Positions 37,925 to 60,910 of a DNA stretch of 64,000 nucleotides are shown one piece after another. The stretch lies in the NCBI GenBank assembly GCA_964187785.1, contig OZ076416.1, forward strand, positions 62,868,001-62,932,000, given 5' to 3'. The number at the start of each line of letters is the position of its first letter. Positions within the stretch are counted from its first letter, which is position 1. A program made the position numbers and the translations under genes. This DNA comes from Amphiscolops sp. MND2022. Taxonomy: Eukaryota. Under the pieces are notes generated by a model, which saw nothing but the letters and a program-made list of their open reading frames with translations, made no database searches and was not told the origin of the DNA.

Positions 37925-40274
37925 CAGTGTATTGTCGTGTAGAAAAATTATCCGGTATTCGATATCGTGTATTATCAAAAAAATTGCTCGTGTGCGGTAT
38001 CGTGTGTCAGAGGGCCCTTACGTGTAGCTTACGGTACTATCGTGTATTTTAGCCAAAACTGAGAAATCGAAAATTAAATTCAAAACTCAACCGGAAAATG
38101 ATATTTTAACATGTTTTTCAAGAGTATCGGGTTTAGTTTTGTTACGCCTGTTGCTTGTGCGCAGGCCACAAGTGTTGAATAATCGTTCCACTGAGGCTCC
38201 AGAAGCAGGACACGACAATGTCAAGCACATGTTTAAAACCTCTGTACTCGGTAAAAGTAGAGTTTTCACTCCAGAATTTTATTGGGTCAACACTTTGAGG
38301 TATTTCTGGCGTGTCAAGATAGCACTCAAACAATTTTTTCCAAGAATCCTTGTTGTTAGTTACTTCTATTGTTGTCTTTCTCAATGAAAAATCAGATAAC
38401 TTCAGAATTTTTGGTGAACTAGGACCAGGCGAGTCATGGCATTCAATGTTCATAACGTCACATTCTTTCACCTTCGCAATGAAATAAGATATAACCATTT
38501 GTCTACTCTTCGAATAATCAAATGTAAAATGTCTTGATGTATCGGTAATTGAATGCTCGGCAAAAGATAATTTAGTACTTGGATCCAAAATAGTTGCAAC
38601 GACATGTAAAGAAGTGATTTTCAGATAATCAAACCGTTTTCGAAGAGAGTTTAGTCTGATTCGAAATGCATTGATGGAAGCTATTGATGGGGATGATTGC
38701 AGCAAAGCATTTTGGAGCTGTTGAACAATTGGAACCATGTGAGGTAAAGTTGGCTTTTTGCTTGCTTGTAATATATCTGTAGCTTCTTGAAAAAGTCTCA
38801 GAAATAACAGAAGACCATTCAAAATGTTCAAGTCAGAGCATGTTGTGAGGTCGATGGCAATGATTGATTTACTACTTCGAAGTTTTTGACAACAGCTTCG
38901 ATCAAACGCATGTTGGAATTCCAGCGTGTAGTACTAGCTTGTGGAATGAAACAGGGCGTACTATAACGAAAACTACTAGATTTTTTGTGCAGCTGTGCAA
39001 TCGATGAGCATTTTGTAATTGCATTGCTTGCATTTGTGTAGCCACGCAGTTCCTTTAAACCATCTTTCACTACAAGTTGTAAGGTGTGGGCAGCACATCC
39101 AAGCCATTCATTTCCGTATTCAGAAAAGCCAGGAAGATCAATATATGAGTTCTCGACTATGAATTGGCATTCATCTAACGTCATTTCTTCTTCATCCGAT
39201 TCGCAATTCGAGGTTGAGGCGTAAAGTTCTTCCGAAAATGCAGCTTTCATATTCGCGGCATTATCTGTTATAACACGAAAAGGTTTAACATTGTATTTTT
39301 CAATTTGTTCAAGAAAACGTGCTCTAATAAGATTGGCTGTATGTGGTGGACGCAGTTCAACAAGAAAAAGAACCATGCATGAAAGTTCATTCCTTTCAAT
39401 AGAATGACAAGTGCTGCCCAAATAACTATTTCCATTTTGTGCTGTCCAGCCGTCTAATGTTACAGTAGGACGCGTATTGGTCTCTGAAAATAACCGTTTC
39501 AGTTTAGAGTCAACATCATTTGCGAATTTCGAAATGTGCTTCATTACAGTGCGGTAGGTTATTTGTGTGAATCGCGGCTGGGTTTCATTCATAAATTGCC
39601 GGAAAAAAGGTCGCTCAGTAATTGTGAGTGGCAAACCCCCTATCGCACAAAGATTTCTTGCAATTGATTCTTCAATAGATTTTTGCTTTTCAAATGGTTC
39701 CACTTCACATGAGAGTCCACCTTTTGGTGAGAATCGGATGATGGGATGACCCGCTAAAGTAGCTCTCATTCATGGACTCATATCTTCTTTCTTCTTCCAT
39801 GAGCTGTTTTTCGTGCTTCGCCTGATAATGTTTTCTTAAATTACCTTTGGAATCAGCGCTGTATAGAATTTCCTCTTGACAAATTCTACAAAGTGCACCT
39901 TTTCCTTTACAATAATTAATTGGAACACTAAACAGTTTTGTATAATCAACTTTCTTTAATGGCGGCATAGTAAAAATAACAATCAAGTCTTGTGTGTAAA
40001 TTCCGTGTTGTAATGTGAAATAGTAATGTGTGCAACGTTAGCAATAGTTAATAAATAAATGCAATAATAAAATACACTCGGACAATGTTAGTGAAAATGA
40101 ACTGAATTAAGTTATCCAAAACACATGTATTTGTCTTATTGAAATTTGATTGGTTCTCATTTGTCGTGTATCAATCGTATATTTAGAGCCGTGTATTCGT
40201 TCTTCGTGTAGCGGTATTTATCAAGTTTAATTCGTGTAGCGATAGCTACATCGTGTATCGTGTACAATACACTG
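37925..40274 (-). mobile_element. Full-length hAT DNA transposon (2350 bp)
   Basis: 11-bp TIR CAGTGTATTGT/ACAATACACTG; perfect 8-bp TSD CTAGGGAC (37917-37924 and 40275-40282); subterminal ATCGTGT repeats at both ends. Confidence 0.96.
38087..39968 (-). pseudogene. hAT transposase (BED finger, DDE core, dimerisation domain) split by about three frameshifts
   Basis: BED-like CRICQEE...GNLRKHYQAKH; TLDGWT; ITDNAANMKAA; GCAAHTLQL; TRWNS; ATILDP; DPIKFW; ASGASVERLFN across ORFs 39705-39986, 38828-39769, 38142-38831 and 38087-38269. Confidence 0.92.
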
Positions 40275-41553: not shown

Positions 41554-44500
41554 GCTCGATGAGGTTTGAAGGTGGGGGGATGAGATAGAAATCAATGAGT
41601 GTCGCTGTCGCAATACGCACTTTGAAAAGCGTTGGTTGGTTTGTCGAGTTTCCTTCCGCCGCTCCTCAGCTGAGGAGGAGGAGCTGAAAATGGCTCGATG
41701 AGGTTTGAAGGTGGGGGGATGAGATAGAAATCAATGAGTGTCGCTGTCGCAATACGCACTTTGAAAAGCAGCGTTGGTTGGTTTGTCGAGTTTCCTTCCG
41801 CCGCTCCTCAGCTGAGGAGGAGGAGCTGAAAATGGCTCGATGAGGTTTGAAGGTGGGGGGATGAGATAGAAATCAATGAGTGTCGCTGTCGCAATACGCA
41901 CTTTGAAAAGCAGCGTTGGTTGGTTTGTCGAGTTTCCTTCCGCCGCTCCTCAGCTGAGGAGGAGGAGCTGAAAATGGCTCGATGAGGTTTGAAGGTGGGG
42001 GGATGAGATAGAAATCAATGAGTGTCGCTGTCGCAATACGCACTTTGAAAAGCAGCGTTGGTTGGTTTGTCGAGTTTCCTTCCGCTCAGCTGAGGAGGAG
42101 GAGCTGAAAATGGCTCGATGAGGTTTGAAGGTGGGGGGATGAGATAGAAATCAATGAGTGTCGCTGTCGCAATACGCACTTTGAAAAGCAGCGTTGGTTG
42201 GTTTGTCGAGTTTCCTTCCGCCGCTCCTCAGCTGAGGAGGAGGAGCTGAAAATGGCTCGATGAGGTTTGAAGGTGGGGGGATGAGATAGAAATCAATGAG
42301 TGTCGCTGTCGCAATACGCACTTTGAAAAGCAGCGTTGGTTGGTTTGTCGAGTTTCCTTCCGCCGCTCCTCAGCTGAGGAGGAGGAGCTGAAAATGGCTC
42401 GATGATGTTTGAAGGTGGGGGGATGAGATAGAAATCAATGAGTGTCGCTGTCGCAATACGCACTTTGAAAAGCAGCGTTGGTTGGTTTGTCGAGTTTCCT
42501 TCCGCCGCTCCTCAGCTGAGGAGGAGGAGCTGAAAATGGCTCGATGAGGTTTGAAGGTGGGGGGATGAGATAGAAATCAATGAGTGTCGCTGTCGCAATA
42601 CGCACTTTGAAAAGCAGCGTTGGTTGGTTTGTCGAGTTTCCTTCCGCCGCTCCTCAGCTGAGGAGGAGGAGCTGAAAATGGCTCGATGAGGTTTGAAGGT
42701 GGGGGGATGAGATAGAAATCAATGAGTGTCGCTGTCGCAATACGCACTTTGAAAAGCAGCGTTGGTTGGTTTGTCGAGTTTCCTTCCGCCGCTCCTCAGC
42801 TGAGGAGGAGGAGCTGAAAATGGCTCGATGATGTTTGAAGGTGGGGGGATGAGATAGAAATCAATGAGTGTCGCTGTCGCAATACGCACTTTGAAAAGCA
42901 GCGTTGGTTGGTTTGTCGAGTTTCCTTCCGCCGCTCCTCAGCTGAGGAGGAGGAGCTGAAAATGGCTCGATGAGGTTTGAAGGTGGGGGGATGAGATAGA
43001 AATCAATGAGTGTCGCTGTCGCAATACGCACTTTGAAAAGCAGCGTTGGTTGGTTTGTCGAGTTTCCTTCCGCCGCTCCTCAGCTGAGGAGGAGGAGCTG
43101 AAAATGGCTCGATGAGGTTTGAAGGTGGGGGGATGAGATAGAAATCAATGAGTGTCGCTGTCGCAATACGCACTTTGAAAAGCAGCGTTGGTTGGTTTGT
43201 CGAGTTTCCTTCCGCCGCTCCTCAGCTGAGGAGGAGGAGCTGAAAATGGCTCGATGAGGTTTGAAGGTGGGGGGATGAGATAGAAATCAATGAGTGTCGC
43301 TGTCGCAATACGCACTTTGAAAAGCAGCGTTGGTTGGTTTGTCGAGTTTCCTTCCGCTCAGCTGAGGAGGAGGAGGAGCTGAAAATGGCTCGATGAGGTT
43401 TGAAGGTGGGGGGATGAGATAGAAATCAATGAGTGTCGCTGTCGCAATACGCACTTTGAAAAGCAGCGTTGGTTGGTTTGTCGAGTTTCCTTCCGCCGCT
43501 CCTCAGCTGAGGAGGAGGAGCTGAAAATGGCTCGATGAGGTTTGAAGGTGGGGGGATGAGATAGAAATCAATGAGTGTCGCTGTCGCAATACGCACTTTG
43601 AAAAGCAGCGTTGGTTGGTTTGTCGAGTTTCCTTCCGCCGCTCCTCAGCTGAGGAGGAGGAGCTGAAAATGGCTCGATGATGTTTGAAGGTGGGGGGATG
43701 AGATAGAAATCAATGAGTGTCGCTGTCGCAATACGCACTTTGAAAAGCAGCGTTGGTTGGTTTGTCGAGTTTCCTTCCGCCGCTCCTCAGCTGAGGAGGA
43801 GGAGCTGAAAATGGCTCGATGAGGTTTGAAGGTGGGGGGATGAGATAGAAATCAATGAGTGTCGCTGTTGCAATACGCACTTTGAAAAGCAGCGTTGGTT
43901 GGTTTGTCGAGTTTCCTTCCGCCGCTCCTCAGCTGAGGAGGAGGAGGAGCTGAAAATGGCTCGATGAGGTTTGAAGGTGGGGGGATGAGATAGAAATCAA
44001 TGAGTGTCGCTGTCGCAATACGCACTTTGAAAAGCAGCGTTGGTTGGTTTGTCGAGTTTCCTTCCGCCGCTCCTCAGCTGAGGAGGAGGAGCTGAAAATG
44101 GCTCGATGATGTTTGAAGGTGGGGGGATGAGATAGAAATCAATGAGTGTCGCTGTCGCAATACGCACTTTGAAAAGCAGCGTTGGTTGGTTTGTCGAGTT
44201 TCCTTCCGCCGCTCCTCAGCTGAGGAGGAGGAGCTGAAAATGGCTCGATGAGGTTTGAAGGTGGGGGGATGAGATAGAAATCAATGAGTGTCGCTGTCGC
44301 AATACGCACTTTGAAAAGCAGCGTTGGTTGGTTTGTCGAGTTTCCTTCCGCCGCTCCTCAGCTGAGGAGGAGGAGCTGAAAATGGCTCGATGAGGTTTGA
44401 AGGTGGGGGGATGAGATAGAAATCAATGAGTGTCGCTGTCGCAATACGCACTTTGAAAAGCAGCGTTGGTTGGTTTGTCGAGTTTCCTTCCGCCGCTCCT

Positions 44501-45056
44501 CAGCTGAGGAGGAGGAGCTGAAAATGGCTCGATGAGGTTTGAAGGTGGGGGGATGAGATAGAAATCAATGAGTGTCGCTGTCGCAATACGCACTTTGAAA
44601 AGCAGCGTTGGTTTGTCGAGTTTCCTTCCGCTCAGCTGAGGAGGAGGAGCTGAAAATGGCTCGATGAGGTTTGAAGGTGGGGGGATGAGATAGAAATCAA
44701 TGAGTGTCGCTGTCGCAATACGCACTTTGAAAAGCAGCGTTGGTTTGTCGAGTTTCCTTCCGCTCAGCTGAGGAGGAGGAGCTGAAAATGGCTCGATGAG
44801 GTTTGAAGGTGGGGGGATGAGATAGAAATCAATGAGTGTCGCTGTCGCAATACGCACTTTGAAAAGCAGCGTTGGTTTGTCGAGTTTCCTTCCGCTCAGC
44901 TGAGGAGGAGGAGCTGAAAATGGCTCGATGAGGTTTGAAGGTGGGGGGATGAGATAGAAGTCAATGAGTGTCGCTGTCGCAATACGCACTTTGAAAAGCA
45001 GCGTTGGTTGGTTTGTCGTCGAGTTTCCTTCCGCCGCTCCTCAGCTGAGGAGGAGG
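41554..45056 (+). repeat. Minisatellite array, 25 units, consensus 142 bp (variants 132-145 bp)
   Basis: GCTCGATG unit starts counted from 41554 to 44923. Full-length units contain the perfect palindrome CTCCTCAGCTGAGGAG; variant units keep a shortened core. Confidence 0.98.
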
Positions 45057-45080
45057 AGGAGGAGGAGGAGGAGGAGGAGG
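45047..45080 (+). repeat. (GAG)11 expansion terminating the array
   Basis: Read directly; it expands the GAG run present in each unit. Confidence 0.95.
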
Positions 45081-51699: not shown

Positions 51700-51885
51700 T
51701 AGGAAGCCCCCTTTTAGGGCTTGTGTCCTTTCTCGCTGGGCTCTTTCTTCGGTGCTGTCTCTCGTGTCTAGCTAGTTTGGAGCTGGTGATCCAGGTTCCA
51801 GAGAAGGTACACTGTTTCCTGTCTTCTCTCTCTTCCAGTGATCTTTGTATGTTTCTCTTTCGTCACCATTCTCATACATAGCTAC
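51700..51885 (-). pseudogene. Downstream part of the LINE RT interrupted by BEL-2
   Basis: Joins 60519-60910 across the GCTAC TSD; the reading continues ...FNIYHNVAM. Confidence 0.6.
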
Positions 51886-52214
51886 TGTTGAAGTACAACT
51901 AAATCAAGCAGATGAAATCAAAAAGTGAAAATCTCTAAACATTCAAATCTCAAGCTATTCATGCTAATTAACACTCACATGCAAATTTGTATACGTCATT
52001 GTTAACTTAATTTGTTCATACTTTGTTCTCATTTCCCACAGTTTCTGTCATTTTTAGTAAAAATCAGTCGAGTTAAAACTTTAACTTGCTCTCCCACTTT
52101 TCATTCAACAAATTAGATTGATTCTAATTTAAAACATTCACCAAATTAGATTGATTCTAATTTACAACTCGCAACAAATTAGATTGATTCTAATTTACAA
52201 CTCACGGAACAACA
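51886..52214 (+). repeat. BEL-2 5' LTR
   Basis: TGTTGAAGTAC...GGAACAACA; matches 60190-60518 with no difference found. Confidence 0.97.
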
Positions 52215-52217
52215 TTT

Positions 52218-52237
52218 TGGTACCGTATCGACCCGGG
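52218..52237 (+). promoter_or_regulatory. Putative primer-binding site
   Basis: TGGTACCGTATCGACCCGGG starts 3 nt after the LTR; the cognate tRNA is uncertain (partly like the recalled tRNA-His complement TGGTGCCGTG). Confidence 0.6.
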
Positions 52238-52260
52238 AAAAACCAGAATTGTTTCTCAGA

Positions 52261-52908
52261 ATGTCTGCAAAGTACGCCGACAAAACACTTGACCAATTGA
52301 AGCGGTCAAGATCTGCAATGCTTGGTGTGATCACCAAAATCAGCAACGAAGCACAAGCTCTTTTGAAAAAGGAGAAAGGTAATCTGCTGGACGAAGACAT
52401 TGACTTGCTGAATTACTGGAAGAAAAAGCTTGAAACCAAGGTTGAAGAAATTGCTCATCTAAATGCTGCTCTTGTCGAAGTTACACCAGACAATGATGCC
52501 GACATGGAAAGGGAGCTTGAAGATGCAGAAAATGCTGAACGAAAAAGTGGTACCCTTCTTGAAGCAGTCAGTCGCATTCTGGAACAATTTGAAGAAACTG
52601 ATGTATCACTGGCACCAATTCAAGAACCAACAAATGCCACATCCAATAGTCACAGCAGCCATATCAAGATGCCCAAATTTGACCTGCCGAAATTCAATGG
52701 TGAATACAAGAAGTGGGTTCCGTTCTATGAACAGTTTATGGCCTCAGTTGATAATAACCCCAGTATTCCAGCAATTCAAAAATTCAATTATCTGAAAGCC
52801 TCACTTACCGACGAAGCTCTTCAATTAGTTGCTCACTTGCCATTGTCAAGCTCGAATTATCCAATTGCTTTGAAGTCGCTTGTTGACCGCTATAACATCC
52901 TAGATTGA
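52261..52908 (+). CDS. BEL gag N-terminal part (coiled coil plus DUF1759-like region), ending at a 1-nt frameshift
   Basis: MSAKYADK...IKMPKFDLPKFNGEYKKWVPFYEQFMASVDNN...QKFNYLKASL...ALKSLVDRY; ATG at 52261. Confidence 0.88.
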   Translation: MSAKYADKTLDQLKRSRSAMLGVITKISNEAQALLKKEKGNLLDEDIDLLNYWKKKLETKVEEIAHLNAALVEVTPDNDADMERELEDAENAERKSGTLLEAVSRILEQFEETDVSLAPIQEPTNATSNSHSSHIKMPKFDLPKFNGEYKKWVPFYEQFMASVDNNPSIPAIQKFNYLKASLTDEALQLVAHLPLSSSNYPIALKSLVDRYNILD

Positions 52909-55900
52909 TTCTCAACAGTCATTTAGATGTTATCTTCGATTTGAAGTCAATGAAGGGCGATTCGGCATCTGAGTTACGCAAATTGTTCGTCACTTTTGAA
53001 GAAAATTTGATGGCGATCAAGGCTCTAGAACTCGGAGACAATTTAGAAGACTTCATTTGGGTACGAATGATTGCAGAAAGGTTGGATCAAGCTTCGAGAG
53101 CTCTTTGGGAAAACGACTACCCTGGTACCAAACCACAAACCCTGACGCAGTTACGAGAGTTTATTGGCAGAAGAGCTCAAGCTCTTGAATCAGCCACGAA
53201 ATCAACTACCAAGGCTTCAGAATGTCCACATCTTAAAGGTAATTCTCAAAAGAAATCTCAACCTACTCAAAACTACAAGGCTAGTGTTGAAAAGTGTCCT
53301 TGTTGTTCAGAAAGTCATAGAATTTATTCTTGCAAGAAATTCACTAACATGAGTCCTAAGGACCGCAAAAATCTCGTTTGGACGTCGAAATTATGCTTTA
53401 ATTGTCTGAACTCCGGTCACAGCACTAAGGAATGCAAGTCAAAGCACACTTGCAAAACATGCCATTCAAAACACAACACGTTGTTACACTTACCTGATGC
53501 ACCAAAAGGAGCTGTTTCTGGCTCACTTACCACAAACCAGGCGACTGCTAGAATTGCCTCTGGCATCGTTCCTACCGCAATGGTTCCCGTTGAAGATGAT
53601 TCTTCAAAAATCACCATGTGTCGAGCCATGATCGACACCGGATCACAGATCAGTTTGATCTCAGAGTCCGCTGTGCAGCGGATGAATTTGAAACGTCATA
53701 AACAGACACTTACCATTAATGGAATTGGAAATGTTTCCAAAACTTACCGTTCCGGCAGTGTTAGCCTGCGATTGAAACCAAGTTCTGGTCATAGTGTCAT
53801 CACAGTTAATGCATATGTCTTACCCAGCCTTACCCAAGTTCTACCTGAACGCGAATTCAGCATCGCCAAATGTTTCCATTTGAGGTCAGTGGATTTAGCA
53901 GACCCTGAATTCAATAAACCCAGAAAAGTGGAAATGATCTTGGGCTCTGATGTTGCAGAGCAAATTTTCCTTGACGGAAAATTTCAAGAAGACAATGGTC
54001 TTCACTTCAGAAACACCATATTTGGCTGGACTGCATCTGGTGTTACAAGAGACCATCAATGGAATGTCGTCACCACCTCACTCTGCATCACCAACTCCTT
54101 CAACCTGAAACAATTTTGGGAGCTTGAAGTCCCTGAGGCAAAAAGGTACAGTGATGAAGAAATTGCTTGTGAGAAGCATTTCAAGGAAACTACCTACATC
54201 GAAGATAACAGATTTCATGTTGGTATGCCTTTCAAACCTGACAGCTCTCCATTGGGAGATACTTTCACTCAAGCGAAGCGTCGTTTTCTAAATCTTGAAA
54301 AACGTCTAGATTCAAATCCTAATCTTAAAAAAGGATACACAGAATTCATTCACGAATTCATCGATCTCAATCATCTGGAACCTGTACCTGACAATGAAAT
54401 TGCAAAACCTGATCATCAATTGAACTTCTTGCCGCATCATTGTGTTCACAAGGAGGATTCAACTACCACGAAGTTGCGTGTGGTATTCGACGGATCTGCC
54501 AAATCCAGTAATGGCAATTCATTCAATGGTTCTCTCATGGTAGGGCCAACAGTACAGCAAGATTTGTTTTCAATTCTTATTCGTTTTCGGTTGCATAAAG
54601 TTGCTCTATCGGGAGATATCGCAAAAATGTACCGACAAATTGCATTAGATCCAGCTGCAAAAGATTTTCACAGACTTTTATGGAGAGATTCAAACACAGA
54701 CTTCATCAAGCAGTTTCGAATGACTCGTGTTACCTACGGAATTGCTTCCTCGGCATTTCATTCAACTCGAAGTGTGGTAGAAGTCGCCAATCTGTGTAAA
54801 GACCAAGTTCTCGCTCAATCAATAAAAAACGATTTCTATGTTGATGACTATTTATCTGGTGCCGAATCAACTGAAGATGCAAAAACGAAAGTAGATGAAA
54901 TTTGCGCAGTTCTGAACAATTATGGATTTGAGCTACGGAAATGGGCTTCTAGTCATCATGAAATCACCTTGTCTTTGCCAGAAAATCTACGAGAAAGCAC
55001 CAACCAAGAAAAATTCATGGATAACAATTACAAAATAAAAACGCTGGGTGTGTCATGGAAACCCAACTCAGATCACTTCGGTTTCTACTCAAATTTGACA
55101 ATTCAAGGGAATGTGACTAAACGACAGTTACTCTCAGAGACAGCGAAGTTGTTCGACCCAGTTGGGTGGCTTTCTCCCATTGTCATCAGATTTAAGGTTT
55201 TACTTCAAAAACTCTGGGTACAAGGTATTGAATGGGACCAACTTGTATCTAAAGAAATTCAGAATGAATGGGAACAAATAAAAGATGACTTGCCCAATTT
55301 GGCAGAACTCAAGCTACAGCGATGTATCTCTCCTCAAGGGAAAATCGCGAATGTTCAACTTCATTTGTTTACAGATGCCTCTGAAATGGCATATGCCGCT
55401 GTCATCTACGCACGGATAACAGATATTGACGGGCATATTGTCTCGAAACTCGTCGCAAGCAAGACACGGGTTGCACCCATCAAAACAGTCTCTTTGCCTC
55501 GATTGGAACTTTGTGCTGCCCATCTTGGAATCAAGCTACTTGTCAAAATCAAGGAAATCTTTGCACTCACAAATCTACCAAGCCCAACTATCTATGGATG
55601 GACTGATTCCACGATAGTTCTCCAATGGCTTTCGCAGCTACCACGAACATGGACCTGTTTCGTCGCCAATAGAGTGTCCGAAATTCAGCAAACTCTTCCT
55701 CGAGAAAATTGGTATCACGTCAAGTCCAATTTGAACCCGGCAGACTGTGCATCAAGAGGGATGATGGTCCAAGACTTACTCAAGCATGACCTCTGGTGGT
55801 TCGGTCCTAATTGGCTATTGCATCCAGAGGATACTTGGCCTCAATTATCTTCAAAAATCGATGATGAAATGCGAAAAATTGTTCAAACAGAACAAAAGCA

Positions 55901-57467
55901 TAAATTCAACACTACTACAGTCACTGCCTCTCAAGTCACGGAACCTCTATTTGACATTAAACGATACAGCACTCTCAGCAAAGTCTTTCGTGTAGCAGCA
56001 AACGTGCATTTAGCTATTGACTTACTTCAAAGGGTCAATAACCATCTGAGTCTTACTCCCTCAAGACTCGCAAAAGCGAAGTATCTCATCATTTCACTTC
56101 ACCAACAAGAGTTCTTCACAGAAGATTTCTTTCGTTTGAAAGCTGGGCAGGAAGTAAGCAGAAAAAGCAAGCTTCTCAACTTATGTCCTTTCTATGATGG
56201 AGATACTGGCACAATCCGCGTTGGTGGTAGATTATCACAAAGTTCACTCGCCGAGTATCAAAAATTTCCTCATCTCATCCACCCTGATTCTCATCTGGCA
56301 GTACTGATTTTACGGCATTTTCATGAAGCTACCCTTCATGGCGGGGGGCAGCTAACGCTCAACTCCAGCAGATCAGAATACTGGATAGTTCGAGGTAAAA
56401 CTCTTGCTAACAAATTTATCCGGAAATGTGTCAAATGCAGTCGATTCTCTAGTGAAATTCCAGCTCAACTTATGGCTGACTTACCTTCCGAAAGAGTTAC
56501 GCCTACCAAACCTTTCGTTAATGTTGGTATTGATTTGGCAGGACCTATTATCATCAAGCCAGACAACAAGACATGGATTGCAGTTTTCGTTTGCTTTTCC
56601 ACAAAGGCTGTTCACATCGAATTAGTCACTGATTTGACAAAAGATTCTTGCATCGCAGCTTTGAAACGATTCGTTGCAAGGCGTGGACTACCAGAAAAGA
56701 TTTTCAGTGACAATGGTACCAATTTCATTGGAGCCAGAAATGATATTGCGAAAGTTCAAAGTCTTTTCAGTAAAGACACAAATGAAAATTCAATCAAAAA
56801 TTACATCAATAGTCGTGGAATTGAATGGATTACTATTCCACCTAGAGCTCCACACTTCGGTGGACTCTGGGAAGCAGCTATTAAGTCAATGAAACGACAC
56901 TTGAGGCGTTGTGTGGGTACGCAAATCTTGACTCATGATGAATTGAACACTTTCGTTATTCAAATTGAAGGAATTCTAAATTCTAGACCTCTCACTCCAA
57001 TGTCTGCTGACCCCAATGATTTACAGCCGCTCACTCCAGCTCACTTCATACTGGGACGAGGGATGAACGATTTACTTTCGCTGACTGCAAGTGAAAGTGA
57101 TGAAAACTTACATCTCAATGTCAGATTGAAGCTTCTGGAAAAATTGAAATCTTCATTTTGGAAGTCTTGGCATCGAGATTACTTGGCTACGCTACAAATA
57201 CGAAAACGATGGCTCACAAGCGGTCCAGAATTCGCAAAAGGTGATTTAGTTTTGATTGCTGAGGACAATCAACCTCCTTTGCACTGGAAAATGGCTCGAG
57301 TAATAGATCTTTATTCTGGTAATGATGAGATAAATCGTGTTGCAAAGGTCAGAACAACCAGTGGAACCCTAATGAGGGCAATAGTCAAGCTCAGAAAGCT
57401 TCCCATAGATCCTCCACAAGCTATATCAGGTCCTGACTTGGGCGGAAATGCAACAGCTCTAACTTAG
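52905..57467 (+). CDS. BEL gag C-terminus plus pol polyprotein (zinc knuckles, protease, RT, RNase H, integrase), 1520 aa open
   Basis: CPCCSESH and CFNCLNSGH...CKTCHSKH knuckles; MIDTGSQ protease; FLPHHCV, KLRVVFDGS, GDIAKMYRQ, FYVDDYLSG RT; LFTDASEMAYAA RNase H; HEATLHGG..CVKC, GIDLAGP, FSDNGTNF, GGLWEAAIKSMK integrase. Confidence 0.97.
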   Translation: MILNSHLDVIFDLKSMKGDSASELRKLFVTFEENLMAIKALELGDNLEDFIWVRMIAERLDQASRALWENDYPGTKPQTLTQLREFIGRRAQALESATKSTTKASECPHLKGNSQKKSQPTQNYKASVEKCPCCSESHRIYSCKKFTNMSPKDRKNLVWTSKLCFNCLNSGHSTKECKSKHTCKTCHSKHNTLLHLPDAPKGAVSGSLTTNQATARIASGIVPTAMVPVEDDSSKITMCRAMIDTGSQISLISESAVQRMNLKRHKQTLTINGIGNVSKTYRSGSVSLRLKPSSGHSVITVNAYVLPSLTQVLPEREFSIAKCFHLRSVDLADPEFNKPRKVEMILGSDVAEQIFLDGKFQEDNGLHFRNTIFGWTASGVTRDHQWNVVTTSLCITNSFNLKQFWELEVPEAKRYSDEEIACEKHFKETTYIEDNRFHVGMPFKPDSSPLGDTFTQAKRRFLNLEKRLDSNPNLKKGYTEFIHEFIDLNHLEPVPDNEIAKPDHQLNFLPHHCVHKEDSTTTKLRVVFDGSAKSSNGNSFNGSLMVGPTVQQDLFSILIRFRLHKVALSGDIAKMYRQIALDPAAKDFHRLLWRDSNTDFIKQFRMTRVTYGIASSAFHSTRSVVEVANLCKDQVLAQSIKNDFYVDDYLSGAESTEDAKTKVDEICAVLNNYGFELRKWASSHHEITLSLPENLRESTNQEKFMDNNYKIKTLGVSWKPNSDHFGFYSNLTIQGNVTKRQLLSETAKLFDPVGWLSPIVIRFKVLLQKLWVQGIEWDQLVSKEIQNEWEQIKDDLPNLAELKLQRCISPQGKIANVQLHLFTDASEMAYAAVIYARITDIDGHIVSKLVASKTRVAPIKTVSLPRLELCAAHLGIKLLVKIKEIFALTNLPSPTIYGWTDSTIVLQWLSQLPRTWTCFVANRVSEIQQTLPRENWYHVKSNLNPADCASRGMMVQDLLKHDLWWFGPNWLLHPEDTWPQLSSKIDDEMRKIVQTEQKHKFNTTTVTASQVTEPLFDIKRYSTLSKVFRVAANVHLAIDLLQRVNNHLSLTPSRLAKAKYLIISLHQQEFFTEDFFRLKAGQEVSRKSKLLNLCPFYDGDTGTIRVGGRLSQSSLAEYQKFPHLIHPDSHLAVLILRHFHEATLHGGGQLTLNSSRSEYWIVRGKTLANKFIRKCVKCSRFSSEIPAQLMADLPSERVTPTKPFVNVGIDLAGPIIIKPDNKTWIAVFVCFSTKAVHIELVTDLTKDSCIAALKRFVARRGLPEKIFSDNGTNFIGARNDIAKVQSLFSKDTNENSIKNYINSRGIEWITIPPRAPHFGGLWEAAIKSMKRHLRRCVGTQILTHDELNTFVIQIEGILNSRPLTPMSADPNDLQPLTPAHFILGRGMNDLLSLTASESDENLHLNVRLKLLEKLKSSFWKSWHRDYLATLQIRKRWLTSGPEFAKGDLVLIAEDNQPPLHWKMARVIDLYSGNDEINRVAKVRTTSGTLMRAIVKLRKLPIDPPQAISGPDLGGNATALT

Positions 57468-57499
57468 AAAAATCCAAGTACATCAGCGCAAAATTGAGG

Positions 57500-58260
57500 C
57501 TGTCATTCAGATGTTTTTTCGGCCCCGAATTTTGTTGGTACAACTTACGGATATTTGAACCTCTCTAAATGATGCCCTAGCATCCCTGTGAAAGGGTCTA
57601 GGAAGCCGAATTTTCAATTTCGACTTATATCTGACGTTATGGCCGTTTGACTTCAGTTTCGTCCCAACACTTTTACTCCAGAATTTGACAATTGTTCATT
57701 TTATTTCGTTTCAGCTGTTTACGTTTAGTCTTTTCTGGCCCTTCCTTATTCCTATTGTTACCAGCTGCTTTATGGGTTGAAATCAACAGCCACCTACCCA
57801 TTAGACTCAAGAAATTCAATTTTAACCAGACAAATTTCGCACTTTCAGCGAAATACAGCATAACTTACCGGATGTTTTTTCGGCCCCGAATGAAGACTAT
57901 TCACTTCCAGATGCTGGTACTACGCTCAAAAGCTTCCTGGAAGCCTCCTGCAGAATGTCTAGGAAGCGGAATTTTGAATTTCTGACTATAACTAAAGTTA
58001 TTGCAATTTTATGTGTATTGCACCTCTTTTGGACTATGGAGTACCGGATGTTTTTTCGGCCCCGAATGAAGACTATTCACTTCCAGACGCTGATACTACG
58101 CTCAAAAGCTTCCTGAAAGCCTCCTGCAGAAAGTCTAGGAAGCCGAATTTTGAATTTTTGATTATAATTAAAGTAATCTCCATTTTACCTGTACTACACC
58201 TGTTTTGGGACTCTGAAATAGTCAATGTTTTTTCGGCCCCGAATGACATTGAAAAAATTT
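57500..58260 (+). repeat. Decayed ~177-bp tandem units in the BEL-2 3' region
   Basis: ATGTTTTTTCGGCCCCGAAT at 57511, 57872, 58048 and 58225; TCTAGGAAGC(C/G)GAATTTT at ~57597, 57958 and 58134. Confidence 0.88.
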
Positions 58261-58838
58261 CCAGCCGTATAGGTGGTCGTAATCGACGCCCACGATTGTT
58301 GGCTACAACTTCCTCGAGCGGGATTTTTCAATTTCGAATTATATTACAAGAAAATCTCATATACAGTTATCAAATTACCATTTGGAATCAGTCAACAGAA
58401 AAATAAACTCGAAGAACAGAATAACTTCAACTCACCTTGATTTATGGGATTTTGCTGCTTCAAGGGCTTCGGCGGGGCTTCGGCAGATCAAGCTCAGAAG
58501 TACCGACCAATGGAATTTATTTATCATCAAATGGAATATTGAATATTCTACTTATCAAACCTACCGAAATGTGGATGTTCGCTTTTATATTTATCAGAAG
58601 CAGACAATCTCTATTGGTCATTCATCAATCTCGAAATTATAATTATTTCAATTCTTTCACTCATCATATTCTAGCAAACGTGGCTTGCGGTTCAAATGGT
58701 TTATTATCAATTCATCATTACGAAATTTCATCTTACTCCTTGAAAAAATTCATGCATGCGCTCGTGACTCATTCAAATAATAATAGATCAATTGACTCAT
58801 TCATTCATTTATTTTGTTCAGATGGAAGCAACAAATTT

Positions 58839-60137
58839 TCAAAGTTCGTCACGAGGCATGCACTCAACGACTGCAGCAACAGGAAGATCTAATTCTTCAT
58901 CAGACGTCAACCCCAGAAGAGCTGGCGCTTCAGAAGAAGTTAGATCCCCCTTTTTAAAGTTGGCCAGCGAGCGATTTTTCTTTCTTCGGGACTTCGCTAA
59001 CGGCTTCATTTCGGGAACGTGAAGGTGCGCTTCCAAATTGAAACCATAGTTAACGAAGGCCTCAAAGTGTTCCAGTACATCACTCCGAGAGAGGAAAGAT
59101 CTAACAGTCGTCTCAGCACGGGAAAGAGAAATTGCTGGATTCAGACTGACTTGAACTTGAAACTTACGCCAGGCTGCCAGTGCAAGCTTCCAGTCCCTGA
59201 CAGTCAGAAGCGACAACAACTTATCCTTTCCGTACCTCTTCAACCACTGTGAGATGTAGCCTCTTCCGCAACCCGTACTGAAATTGTTAAAAACAACAGT
59301 GGCTCGCCTAGTGTCGCGCAAATCCAGACCTTCCCAACCATGCACAAGTGCCCATCGAGTAGAGCCATCAGCAGCAAAAGCTCGACCCGTTAGAACACAA
59401 TGCGCATAACAAGCAGGCTGAATTAGCACGTCACCTTCTTCAGCTAAGTGAAACCGCAAACCACGAATGTTTCTCTTGTCCTGCTTATGCGTTTTCGAAC
59501 GTTTTGACTTTGCACCCATCAAGAGCTGATAAAAATGATCAAAGCTTTGAATGGACATAAGGAACTTAGAAGAGCTAATATTGGTAGCTATGATCCACAG
59601 CTTGCGGCCGGATGATAGCTTAGCAATACTTTCTCCTCCAGCAGGTTCGATGTGTCCACATGTCATCCAAGGCCCCTTCGCTGCTAAAAGAGCCTTGGAG
59701 CCAACTTTGATATAACCCGGAGCAAGACAATTAACAGCCGAGTCAGGCAACACAAAGGAGCACGTTCTGCTGCCTTCAAAACCCCGGTTGTCCCTTCCCT
59801 TGCTACGACTTGTAACAGTGGCTCCTGTTGACTGCAAAAAGTCCGAGAACGCACAAGCACCCTTATTCCAAAGTGATTTGACTCTGGGAGCCAAATCACA
59901 GAGACTGTCTGCTGCAACGCCCCGAACTACCGTGGTGACAGTTGGAAATTTAATCCCCCAGCTGAAAATGGAGACCACCAACAGCGGAAGAATTCCCCTC
60001 TGTCTCCACGCCAGTCCTCCACGCTGCTCCACTTCAGCAAACACCTTCTCAACGCGACTTTCGTCTGGGACTGTTGGAGGCACTTCCTCGCCGTCACTAA
60101 CCTCCGCACCCGCGTCCACCATCTCTTCTAGATTCAT
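58839..60137 (-). CDS. JmjC-domain Fe(II)/2OG dioxygenase-like protein (432 aa), antisense cargo of BEL-2
   Basis: Motif T159-x2-H162-x-E164...G-x-K179-x-W...G-D-V-L-I-Q-P-x3-H246-x-V-L; acidic N-terminus; basic KSRRKKNR near the C-terminus; ATG 52 bp from the 3' LTR; AATAAA on the minus strand at 58808-58813. Confidence 0.82.
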   Translation of the reverse strand: MNLEEMVDAGAEVSDGEEVPPTVPDESRVEKVFAEVEQRGGLAWRQRGILPLLVVSIFSWGIKFPTVTTVVRGVAADSLCDLAPRVKSLWNKGACAFSDFLQSTGATVTSRSKGRDNRGFEGSRTCSFVLPDSAVNCLAPGYIKVGSKALLAAKGPWMTCGHIEPAGGESIAKLSSGRKLWIIATNISSSKFLMSIQSFDHFYQLLMGAKSKRSKTHKQDKRNIRGLRFHLAEEGDVLIQPACYAHCVLTGRAFAADGSTRWALVHGWEGLDLRDTRRATVVFNNFSTGCGRGYISQWLKRYGKDKLLSLLTVRDWKLALAAWRKFQVQVSLNPAISLSRAETTVRSFLSRSDVLEHFEAFVNYGFNLEAHLHVPEMKPLAKSRRKKNRSLANFKKGDLTSSEAPALLGLTSDEELDLPVAAVVECMPRDEL

Positions 60138-60176
60138 TGCAAAATCTGAAATTATTAAAGAATCTACCGATCCTTC

Positions 60177-60189
60177 AAGGCGGGCGGTA
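60177..60189 (+). promoter_or_regulatory. Polypurine-tract-like motif of BEL-2
   Basis: AAGGCGGGCGGTA abuts the 3' LTR; nearly the same motif precedes the BEL-1 3' LTR. Confidence 0.8.
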
Positions 60190-60518
60190 TGTTGAAGTAC
60201 AACTAAATCAAGCAGATGAAATCAAAAAGTGAAAATCTCTAAACATTCAAATCTCAAGCTATTCATGCTAATTAACACTCACATGCAAATTTGTATACGT
60301 CATTGTTAACTTAATTTGTTCATACTTTGTTCTCATTTCCCACAGTTTCTGTCATTTTTAGTAAAAATCAGTCGAGTTAAAACTTTAACTTGCTCTCCCA
60401 CTTTTCATTCAACAAATTAGATTGATTCTAATTTAAAACATTCACCAAATTAGATTGATTCTAATTTACAACTCGCAACAAATTAGATTGATTCTAATTT
60501 ACAACTCACGGAACAACA
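60190..60518 (+). repeat. BEL-2 3' LTR
   Basis: Copy of 51886-52214, followed by TSD GCTAC. Confidence 0.97.
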
Positions 60519-60910
60519 GCTACGTTGTGGTATATATTGAATAGAATCGGGCTAGTTGCACATCCCTCCCTGAGGCCTCGTTTGGATGTCCAGGGTGCGC
60601 TCACTTGCTTTTTGCCTCTCACTCTGTGAAAGGTGGTTTCATGGAGACCTCGTAGTATTCTCAAACTTCTCTCCGAAACCGAGCCTCTCCAGGATGTACC
60701 ATATTAGTGGGCGGTTTTCACGTGGGTAAGCCTTCACAGTAAGGTGGCTGTTGGGTGATTGGGGGAGCATTCTTCTGGTTACACTCGCCCAAGTCTTATC
60801 AGCCCCTCGTTGATTCTTATGACGATCTGTGTTGCATCAGCTGTAGATCTTCCTCGCCTGAATCCACACTGAGAGTCGTCGATTATGTTCTCTGTCTCGG
60901 TCCACTTCCG
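60519..60910 (-). pseudogene. LINE reverse transcriptase remnant (target of the BEL-2 insertion)
   Basis: Minus-strand translation: IIDDSQCGFRRGRSTADA...KAYPR...RGLREGCATSPILFNIYHNVA, with frameshifts. Confidence 0.82.

Follow-up and report, generated by a model that had tools for sequence, protein, structure and literature searches.

A JmjC-fold protein encoded antisense to gag-pol in a BEL/Pao retrotransposon of Amphiscolops sp.

INTRODUCTION

Hosts silence retrotransposons largely via histone methylation, and to our knowledge very few element-encoded counter-measures to silencing have been described. Transposon-borne examples of epigenetic counter-measures are VANC of the VANDAL MULEs and the TET/JBP dioxygenases linked to fungal KDZ DNA transposons, the latter being Fe/2-oxoglutarate (2OG) dioxygenases. 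A further point of reference is HBZ of human T-cell leukemia virus type 1 (HTLV-1), an antisense gene that is driven from the 3′ long terminal repeat (LTR) and has a spliced form with its first exon in the LTR. Here we describe an antisense gene, referred to below as the cargo, in a BEL/Pao retrotransposon of Amphiscolops sp. MND2022. The element lies in a 64,000-nucleotide (nt) stretch of contig OZ076416.1 (assembly GCA_964187785.1, forward-strand positions 62,868,001 to 62,932,000), which was analyzed as a whole and is called the window, and its cargo encodes a 432-amino-acid (aa) protein with the fold of the JmjC superfamily of Fe(II)/2OG oxygenases.

LTR elements of plants and fungi are known to carry antisense open reading frames (ORFs) in the interval from pol to the 3′ LTR, of unknown function and with products that bear no resemblance to known proteins (PMC7264820). 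Those of the aORF-3R type (Grande gene23, RIRE2, Retand, PvRetro13, and Boty) have the same position and orientation as the cargo and, as the cargo is, are found in most copies and conserved like the other element genes; some of the encoded proteins are nuclear (PMC7264820). The cargo itself falls within the published definition of aORF-3R, since it is antisense, lies between pol and the 3′ LTR, and occurs in conserved form in the majority of family copies (PMC7264820). By contrast, aORF-3R genes reside in Ty3/Gypsy elements of plants and fungi and encode unrecognizable proteins (PMC7264820), whereas the cargo resides in metazoan-type BEL/Pao and Gypsy-type elements and encodes an identifiable enzyme fold. 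In bdelloid rotifers, LTR retrotransposons carry ORF3 types that are shared between unrelated retroelement types (PMC5408684), as the cargo is shared between BEL/Pao and Gypsy-type elements, but the rotifer types (env, DEDDy, GDSL, CC, and TM) include no JmjC protein or oxygenase (PMC5408684). The antisense promoter of HTLV is located in the 3′ LTR (PMC7264820).

The cargo resembles HBZ in abutting the 3′ LTR and in having an acceptor-like motif just before its ATG, but HBZ is a bZIP regulator, whereas the cargo encodes a predicted enzyme and is a putative LTR-driven gene. With VANC and TET/JBP it would share the principle of a mobile element equipped with a factor that could undo silencing marks, which is hypothetical for the cargo; those factors belong to DNA transposons, represent other folds or families, and are concerned with DNA methylation, whereas the cargo is found in LTR retrotransposons. 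No report of JmjC in BEL/Pao or in any retroelement was found in the open-access literature, which is not proof of absence, and this agrees with a preliminary description of the window, made from the sequence by a model, that knew of no such cargo in BEL/Pao elements. Likewise, no histone-modifying enzyme carried by a retrotransposon was among the counter-measures found in the literature. We class the cargo with the antisense accessory ORFs of LTR elements, to which it adds an enzyme identity and an occurrence across superfamilies. A long-unexplained kind of extra ORF thereby gains a recognizable enzyme identity and a testable active site.

RESULTS

An antisense gene inside an intact BEL/Pao element

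The element and the landmarks around its antisense gene are as follows (window coordinates).

51881-51885: left target-site duplication, GCTAC; the identical 5 nt flank both LTRs
51886-60518: complete BEL/Pao element; the two LTRs are identical, the target site is duplicated over 5 bp, and both gag and pol are intact
51886-52214, plus strand: 5′ LTR, 329 bp, TG...CA ends, 100% identity to the 3′ LTR
52215-52237, plus strand: primer-binding-site region of the TGG type, directly after the 5′ LTR, as read from the sequence
52249-52908, plus strand: gag, DUF1759 (Pfam, E=5.2e-19)
52905-57467, plus strand: pol, with protease, reverse transcriptase, Pao peptidase_A17 region, integrase, and DUF5641 (Pfam); unbroken frame of 1,520 aa
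58808-58813, minus strand: AATAAA, candidate poly(A) signal, 26 nt past the cargo stop codon
58839-60137, minus strand: cargo gene, 432 aa, JmjC-fold 2OG/Fe(II) oxygenase of an unnamed family; ATG start, no internal stops
60146-60162, minus strand: pyrimidine-rich run ending in CAG, splice-acceptor-like, 8 nt upstream of the cargo ATG
60173-60189, plus strand: polypurine tract adjoining the 3′ LTR, kept between lineages
60190-60518, plus strand: 3′ LTR, 329 bp, TG...CA ends; presumed site of an antisense promoter for the cargo
60519-60523: right target-site duplication, GCTAC, pairing with 51881-51885

The pol frame overlaps gag in the −1 frame and matches Peptidase_A17 (E=1.7e-50), RVT_1, rve, and DUF5641 in Pfam. 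These matches and the DUF1759-type gag identify the element as BEL/Pao, as the preliminary description had proposed, and the LTRs, the target-site duplication, and the integrase agree with that assignment. The copy in the window is young and intact. Among the sequencing unitigs, diverse flanks begin at 60518-60520, the outer edge of the 3′ LTR, and in four sequencing runs the unitigs were short and deep with many differing flanks, hence behaving as genomic DNA.

The cargo runs convergent to pol, and its ATG (60137) lies 52 nt from the inner edge of the 3′ LTR (60190). The unbroken 432-codon frame antisense to gag-pol within the LTR pair, its distance from the 3′ LTR, the AATAAA shortly past its stop, and the quoted peptides had all been reported in the preliminary description, and each was recovered here. 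The AATAAA is kept in the two closest subfamilies only, and it was rejected as a general conserved feature.

The layout at the start of the gene is kept more widely. In every BEL lineage compared, the ATG is located 42-54 nt from the inner edge of the 3′ LTR, and the order along the gene strand is kept, from the LTR end through the complement of the polypurine tract and a pyrimidine-rich run ending in YAG to the ATG. The run with its YAG sits 0-8 nt before the ATG in all of these lineages. Since there is no space for a promoter between LTR and ATG, any transcript of the gene would have to start within the LTR or outside it, and this anatomy fits an LTR-resident antisense promoter. The pyrimidine tract and YAG resemble a splice acceptor, by analogy with spliced HBZ, and may merely mirror the purine-rich sense strand beside the polypurine tract. 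In the sister subfamily (loci L019 to L022), the cargo frame runs 31 codons further upstream to an ATG inside the LTR, giving an extended product of 462-463 aa; products of this kind are annotated as genes in public assemblies.

Copies of the cargo are linked to gag-pol and kept by selection

The genome (about 1.07 Gb in 13 chromosome-scale contigs) was searched by six-frame protein matching, which yielded at least 103 matches to the cargo protein at 100% to 36% identity, 14 of them full length and without stops. Twenty loci spanning this identity range were then compared for context. In 18 of the 20, the cargo is antisense and just downstream of a BEL/Pao gag-pol, and this linkage holds even where pol is only 55-65% and the cargo only 38-53% identical to that in the window. 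Whether copies always sit in BEL elements had been posed earlier as a check; the association stood at these 18 loci, but it is not exclusive, because homologues also occur in Gypsy-type elements (see below). Query-anchored trees of cargo and pol agreed in their three deep groups, and this congruence indicated that the cargo was already present in the common ancestor of these BEL lineages and has codiverged with them from then on.

Between the window subfamily and its 92%-identical sister, the synonymous divergence (dS) of the cargo is 0.19, and the ratio of nonsynonymous to synonymous divergence (dN/dS) is 0.17-0.23, which bears out the earlier expectation of a value below 1. For pol, the comparison of window and sister elements gave a dS of 0.045 and a dN/dS of 0.22-0.25, such that selection on the cargo (about 0.2) equals that on pol. 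Among near-identical copies of the cargo, dS is very low and dN/dS is about 1, as neutral decay after insertion predicts. A frame kept in many diverged copies at a dN/dS of about 0.2 places the ORF far beyond chance. In addition, several cargo-carrying lineages have LTR pairs that are identical or 96-100% identical, indicating that they were recently active. These results establish the cargo as an integral, selected part of this BEL/Pao lineage.

The cargo has not always stayed with the same pol. In L022 (G000:C3:27008200-27017700), gag and pol match those of the window at 99.9-100% identity, whereas the cargo reaches only 89.8% and clusters with that of the sister subfamily. This mosaic, and a cargo dS four-fold above that of pol, point to recombination, and the cargo region has evidently been exchanged between coexisting BEL subfamilies.

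Three loci deserve separate mention. At L016 (G000:C6:45169700-45179100), the cargo frame is unbroken, yet residues at sites that are otherwise invariant have been replaced (e.g., H162 by Y) and pol has decayed; an open frame alone is no proof of a working copy. At L017, only an RVT_1 fragment was found, 5.6 kb from the cargo homologue. A 401-aa neighboring ORF at L018 was considered as a second JmjC gene and rejected (hhalign probability, 0.6%).

The cargo protein is a divergent member of the JmjC superfamily

The protein is made up of the following parts, all on the minus strand.

59022-60065: folded region, residues 25-372, comprising a JmjC double-stranded beta-helix and a C-terminal helical domain; predicted local distance difference test score (pLDDT) mostly >90
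59400-59663: active-site codons T159 (59663-59661), H162 (59654-59652), E164 (59648-59646), K179 (59603-59601), and H246 (59402-59400)
58950-58997: basic motif, residues 381-396 (KSRRKKNR, then LAN), resembling a nuclear localization signal by sequence; conserved

Sequence searches with the window protein did not place it in a family. Pfam gave no match, including JmjC, JmjC_2, and Cupin_8, so that the domain match suggested as a check in the preliminary description was not obtained, and neither phmmer with the single sequence nor a profile of 13 cargo sequences found a relevant match in the PDB. A profile search of 1.84 billion representatives retrieved 161 relatives, none of which is named in any source or reaches a Pfam threshold. 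At sub-threshold level, JmjC was matched by 7 and JmjC_2 by 3 of 58 relatives (best E=2.8e-4), these being the only meaningful Pfam families matched more than once, and a protein-language-model search pointed to JmjC/Cupin_8 clusters. No close cellular homologue was found by the profile search or by the structure search of AFDB clusters.

The fold gave a clearer answer. An AlphaFold2 model built on a 58-sequence alignment reached a pLDDT of 89.2 and a predicted template modeling score of 0.88, replacing a model from a shallow alignment of 13 close copies that was discarded (pLDDT, 51). It consists of a single folded unit with disordered ends, the core being a double-stranded beta-helix (cupin) of the JmjC type. 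With Foldseek, the model matched 401 PDB chains (E<=1e-3); the 50 that were listed are without exception JmjC enzymes, including TYW5, FIH, PHF2/8, KDM7, KDM5, and JMJ13/14. JmjC-class entries also dominated the structure matches among Swiss-Prot models, AFDB clusters, and the ESM Atlas.

The active site agrees with the fold. Among relatives down to 18% identity, T/S159 is kept in 55/56, H162 and E/D164 each in 54/56, K179 in 56/58, and H246 in 57/58, and conservation of the five residues that bind metal and 2OG is 93-98% over the 58 homologues. When the broad profile was used, PHF8 and ceKDM7A were the only PDB sequences matched at E<0.1 (E about 0.012-0.02), and the alignment put the cargo ligands on T-x-x-H-I-D, G-E-K, and H-A-V-L-T. 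The protein thus has the H-x-D/E...H iron triad, and T/S159 and K179 align on the 2OG-binding T and K of PHF8. The residue numbers and the triad with its 2OG ligands had been read correctly in the preliminary description, and the model and Foldseek matches it had called for were obtained. It had also likened the spacing of T (−3) and K (+17) to that of JMJD6; this spacing is present, but it is not specific for JMJD6, for PHF8 has the same. Within the basic C-terminal motif, N388, L391, A392, and N393 are invariant or nearly so.

Since Pfam gives no match and JmjC is reached only via deeper profiles and structure, we conclude that the cargo represents a new, divergent family within the JmjC superfamily that has an intact Fe(II)/2OG site. 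That it is the element's own conserved gene and has a JmjC identity is strongly supported. The protein is likely catalytically competent.

Resemblance to demethylases and hydroxylases

JmjC enzymes include histone demethylases as well as hydroxylases of proteins or RNA, and the structure and profile matches of the cargo lean slightly to the demethylases KDM2/KDM7/PHF8. The cargo model aligned to PHF2, PHF8, KDM7, and KDM2A over residues 25 to about 407, and the alignments that run through the C-terminal helical domain are those with the KDM2/7 group. An H3K36-demethylase cluster was the best shape match in the ESM Atlas, and the profile-to-sequence matches at E<0.1 described above fall on this group only. 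The relationship is distant, identity to JHDM1, PHF8, PHF2, KIAA1718, and ceKDM7A being 16% or less. KDM2/KDM7 enzymes are host genes, whereas the cargo is retrotransposon encoded, and they use Asp as the metal carboxylate where the cargo has Glu.

Two observations weigh against a firm placement in this group. JMJD5, TYW5, JMJD6, and FIH score within about 1.5 Z, and no PHD, CXXC, F-box, or other reader or targeting domain was found in the cargo by Pfam or in its fold, whereas KDM2/KDM7 carry PHD/CXXC/F-box modules. JMJD6, JMJD5, FIH, TYW5, and JMJD4 have the same fold as the cargo with near-equal scores, and they are alike in their small single-domain architecture. The cargo could be an active protein or RNA hydroxylase of this kind that aids replication of the element, modifying a host factor (splicing, translation, or nuclear import) or an element protein (Gag or integrase). 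These enzymes, however, have no profile-to-sequence match to the cargo, their alignments end before the C-terminal helical domain, and the H-x-V-L-T motif is shared with PHF8 and ceKDM7A; KDM2-type clusters, moreover, are among the best ESM Atlas shape matches. We consider a hydroxylase less likely, though a serious contender, and moderately favor a demethylase over it. Should the cargo turn out to be a hydroxylase, this would suggest that retroelements rely on the host in some way so far unrecognized.

Homologues of the cargo in Gypsy-type elements

In another assembly, a homologue of 44-46% identity is likewise found next to a BEL/Pao pol in antisense orientation, with identical LTRs on either side. 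The carriers of more distant homologues have a pol that matches RVT_1, RT_RNaseH, RT_RNaseH_2, and rve and lacks Peptidase_A17, and such a pol identifies them as Ty3/Gypsy type. P0014 (30% identical) is antisense, 1 kb from a Gypsy-type pol, in L035; a search of this genome with the L035 gene gave no match at the DNA level, so that the gene comes from another organism. In L040 and L042, P0052 and P0088 (20% identical) are again antisense, with a Gypsy-type pol on one side and a sense-strand ORF3 on the other, and at L040 the whole arrangement of pol, antisense gene, and ORF3 lies within an identical LTR pair; the L040 gene has partial matches in this genome at 90-92% DNA identity. A Gypsy-type integrase accompanied by a 42%-identical homologue of P0014 was found in this genome at L018. 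These data indicated that the cargo is common to two LTR superfamilies, and it behaves as a mobile module that recombines between BEL subfamilies and is also found in Gypsy-type elements. Both the sharing and the recombination had been missed by the preliminary description.

The sense-strand ORF3 that follows the antisense JmjC gene encodes 701 aa in L040 (L040:5986-8091, minus strand) and 581 aa in L042 (L042:6772-8517, minus strand), with no Pfam match in either case. A different context was seen in L038, a 19-kb contig of ERZ25074608, where the JmjC-family member P0015 is flanked on either side by a copy of a 9.5-kb direct repeat with PIF1-helicase fragments; this tandem structure is not the context of an LTR element.

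A proposed role in counteracting silencing

The explanation that we consider best, and to which we give about an even chance, is that the cargo is an active JmjC Fe(II)/2OG oxygenase that is expressed antisense from the LTR and weakens silencing by histone demethylation. The element would keep the enzyme for its own propagation. A promoter in the 3′ LTR would drive transcription of the minus strand, and the transcript, which may have a short spliced leader, would be polyadenylated just past the stop codon. The protein would enter the nucleus via its conserved basic C-terminal motif and there strip repressive lysine methylation from histones by chemistry like that of KDM2/KDM7/PHF8, and heterochromatin-based silencing of the element family would be weakened as a consequence. 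If it proves a demethylase, the cargo would give transposons a weapon of a new kind in their arms race with the host and would add a new compact family to the JmjC enzymes.

More tentatively, these genes may form a hitherto unrecognized class of retroelement-borne JmjC demethylases that serve in epigenetic counter-defense. Members of this class would be exchanged as a module, both among BEL/Pao subfamilies and, in animals, across the divide that separates the BEL/Pao from the Ty3/Gypsy superfamily, would be expressed antisense from the LTR, possibly with a spliced leader, and would erase the repressive histone methylation that small-RNA-guided silencing deposits, so that their carriers stay active.

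An opposite role is improbable. The cargo might restrain its element (copy-number control, or host friendliness), or the antisense RNA might be the functional product through feedback by double-stranded RNA and small RNA, the protein being secondary. The convergent orientation to pol suits this explanation, as does the capacity of antisense LTR-element transcripts to contribute to silencing; for antisense ORFs of plants, no role has been established (PMC7264820). Purifying selection on amino acids and catalytic residues over deep divergence would, however, be needless for an RNA alone, and the several carrier lineages with identical or near-identical LTRs, hence recently active, argue against restraint. 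Scarcely better, and if anything a shade less probable, is a pseudo-enzyme whose JmjC fold acts as a scaffold, binding chromatin or a host factor with no turnover: some JmjC proteins show little or no activity alone, and the cargo has no match at Pfam threshold, but a scaffold would not need the five ligands that its relatives keep down to 18% identity. Passive capture of a host-gene fragment, or a functionless chance ORF, has nothing in its favor beyond the unusual position and is refuted by multiple copies in diverged lineages with congruent trees, a dN/dS of about 0.2 and catalytic residues kept, by the occurrence of the cargo in other assemblies and in another LTR superfamily, and by the lack of a close cellular homologue in the searches described.

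Other features of the window

Two tandem repeats lie within the element itself.

52102-52201: 33-bp tandem repeat, 3 copies, inside the 5′ LTR
57866-58208: 176-bp tandem repeat, 2 copies, in the noncoding spacer that separates the stop codons of pol and cargo

At the matching spacer position, locus L019 has a 177-bp unit in three copies (L019:5870-6400). An Rfam scan of the window gave no match. Outside the element, a 142-bp satellite array at 41554-45058 comprises about 25 copies with 97% matches; it differs from the remainder of the window in being GC rich (about 0.51) and in its strongly positive GC skew. Two adjoining ORFs of 229 and 313 aa occupy 38142-39769 on the minus strand, the first with a weak, sub-threshold hAT-like RNase-H match (E=0.0075), and the pair may be a decayed hAT transposase.
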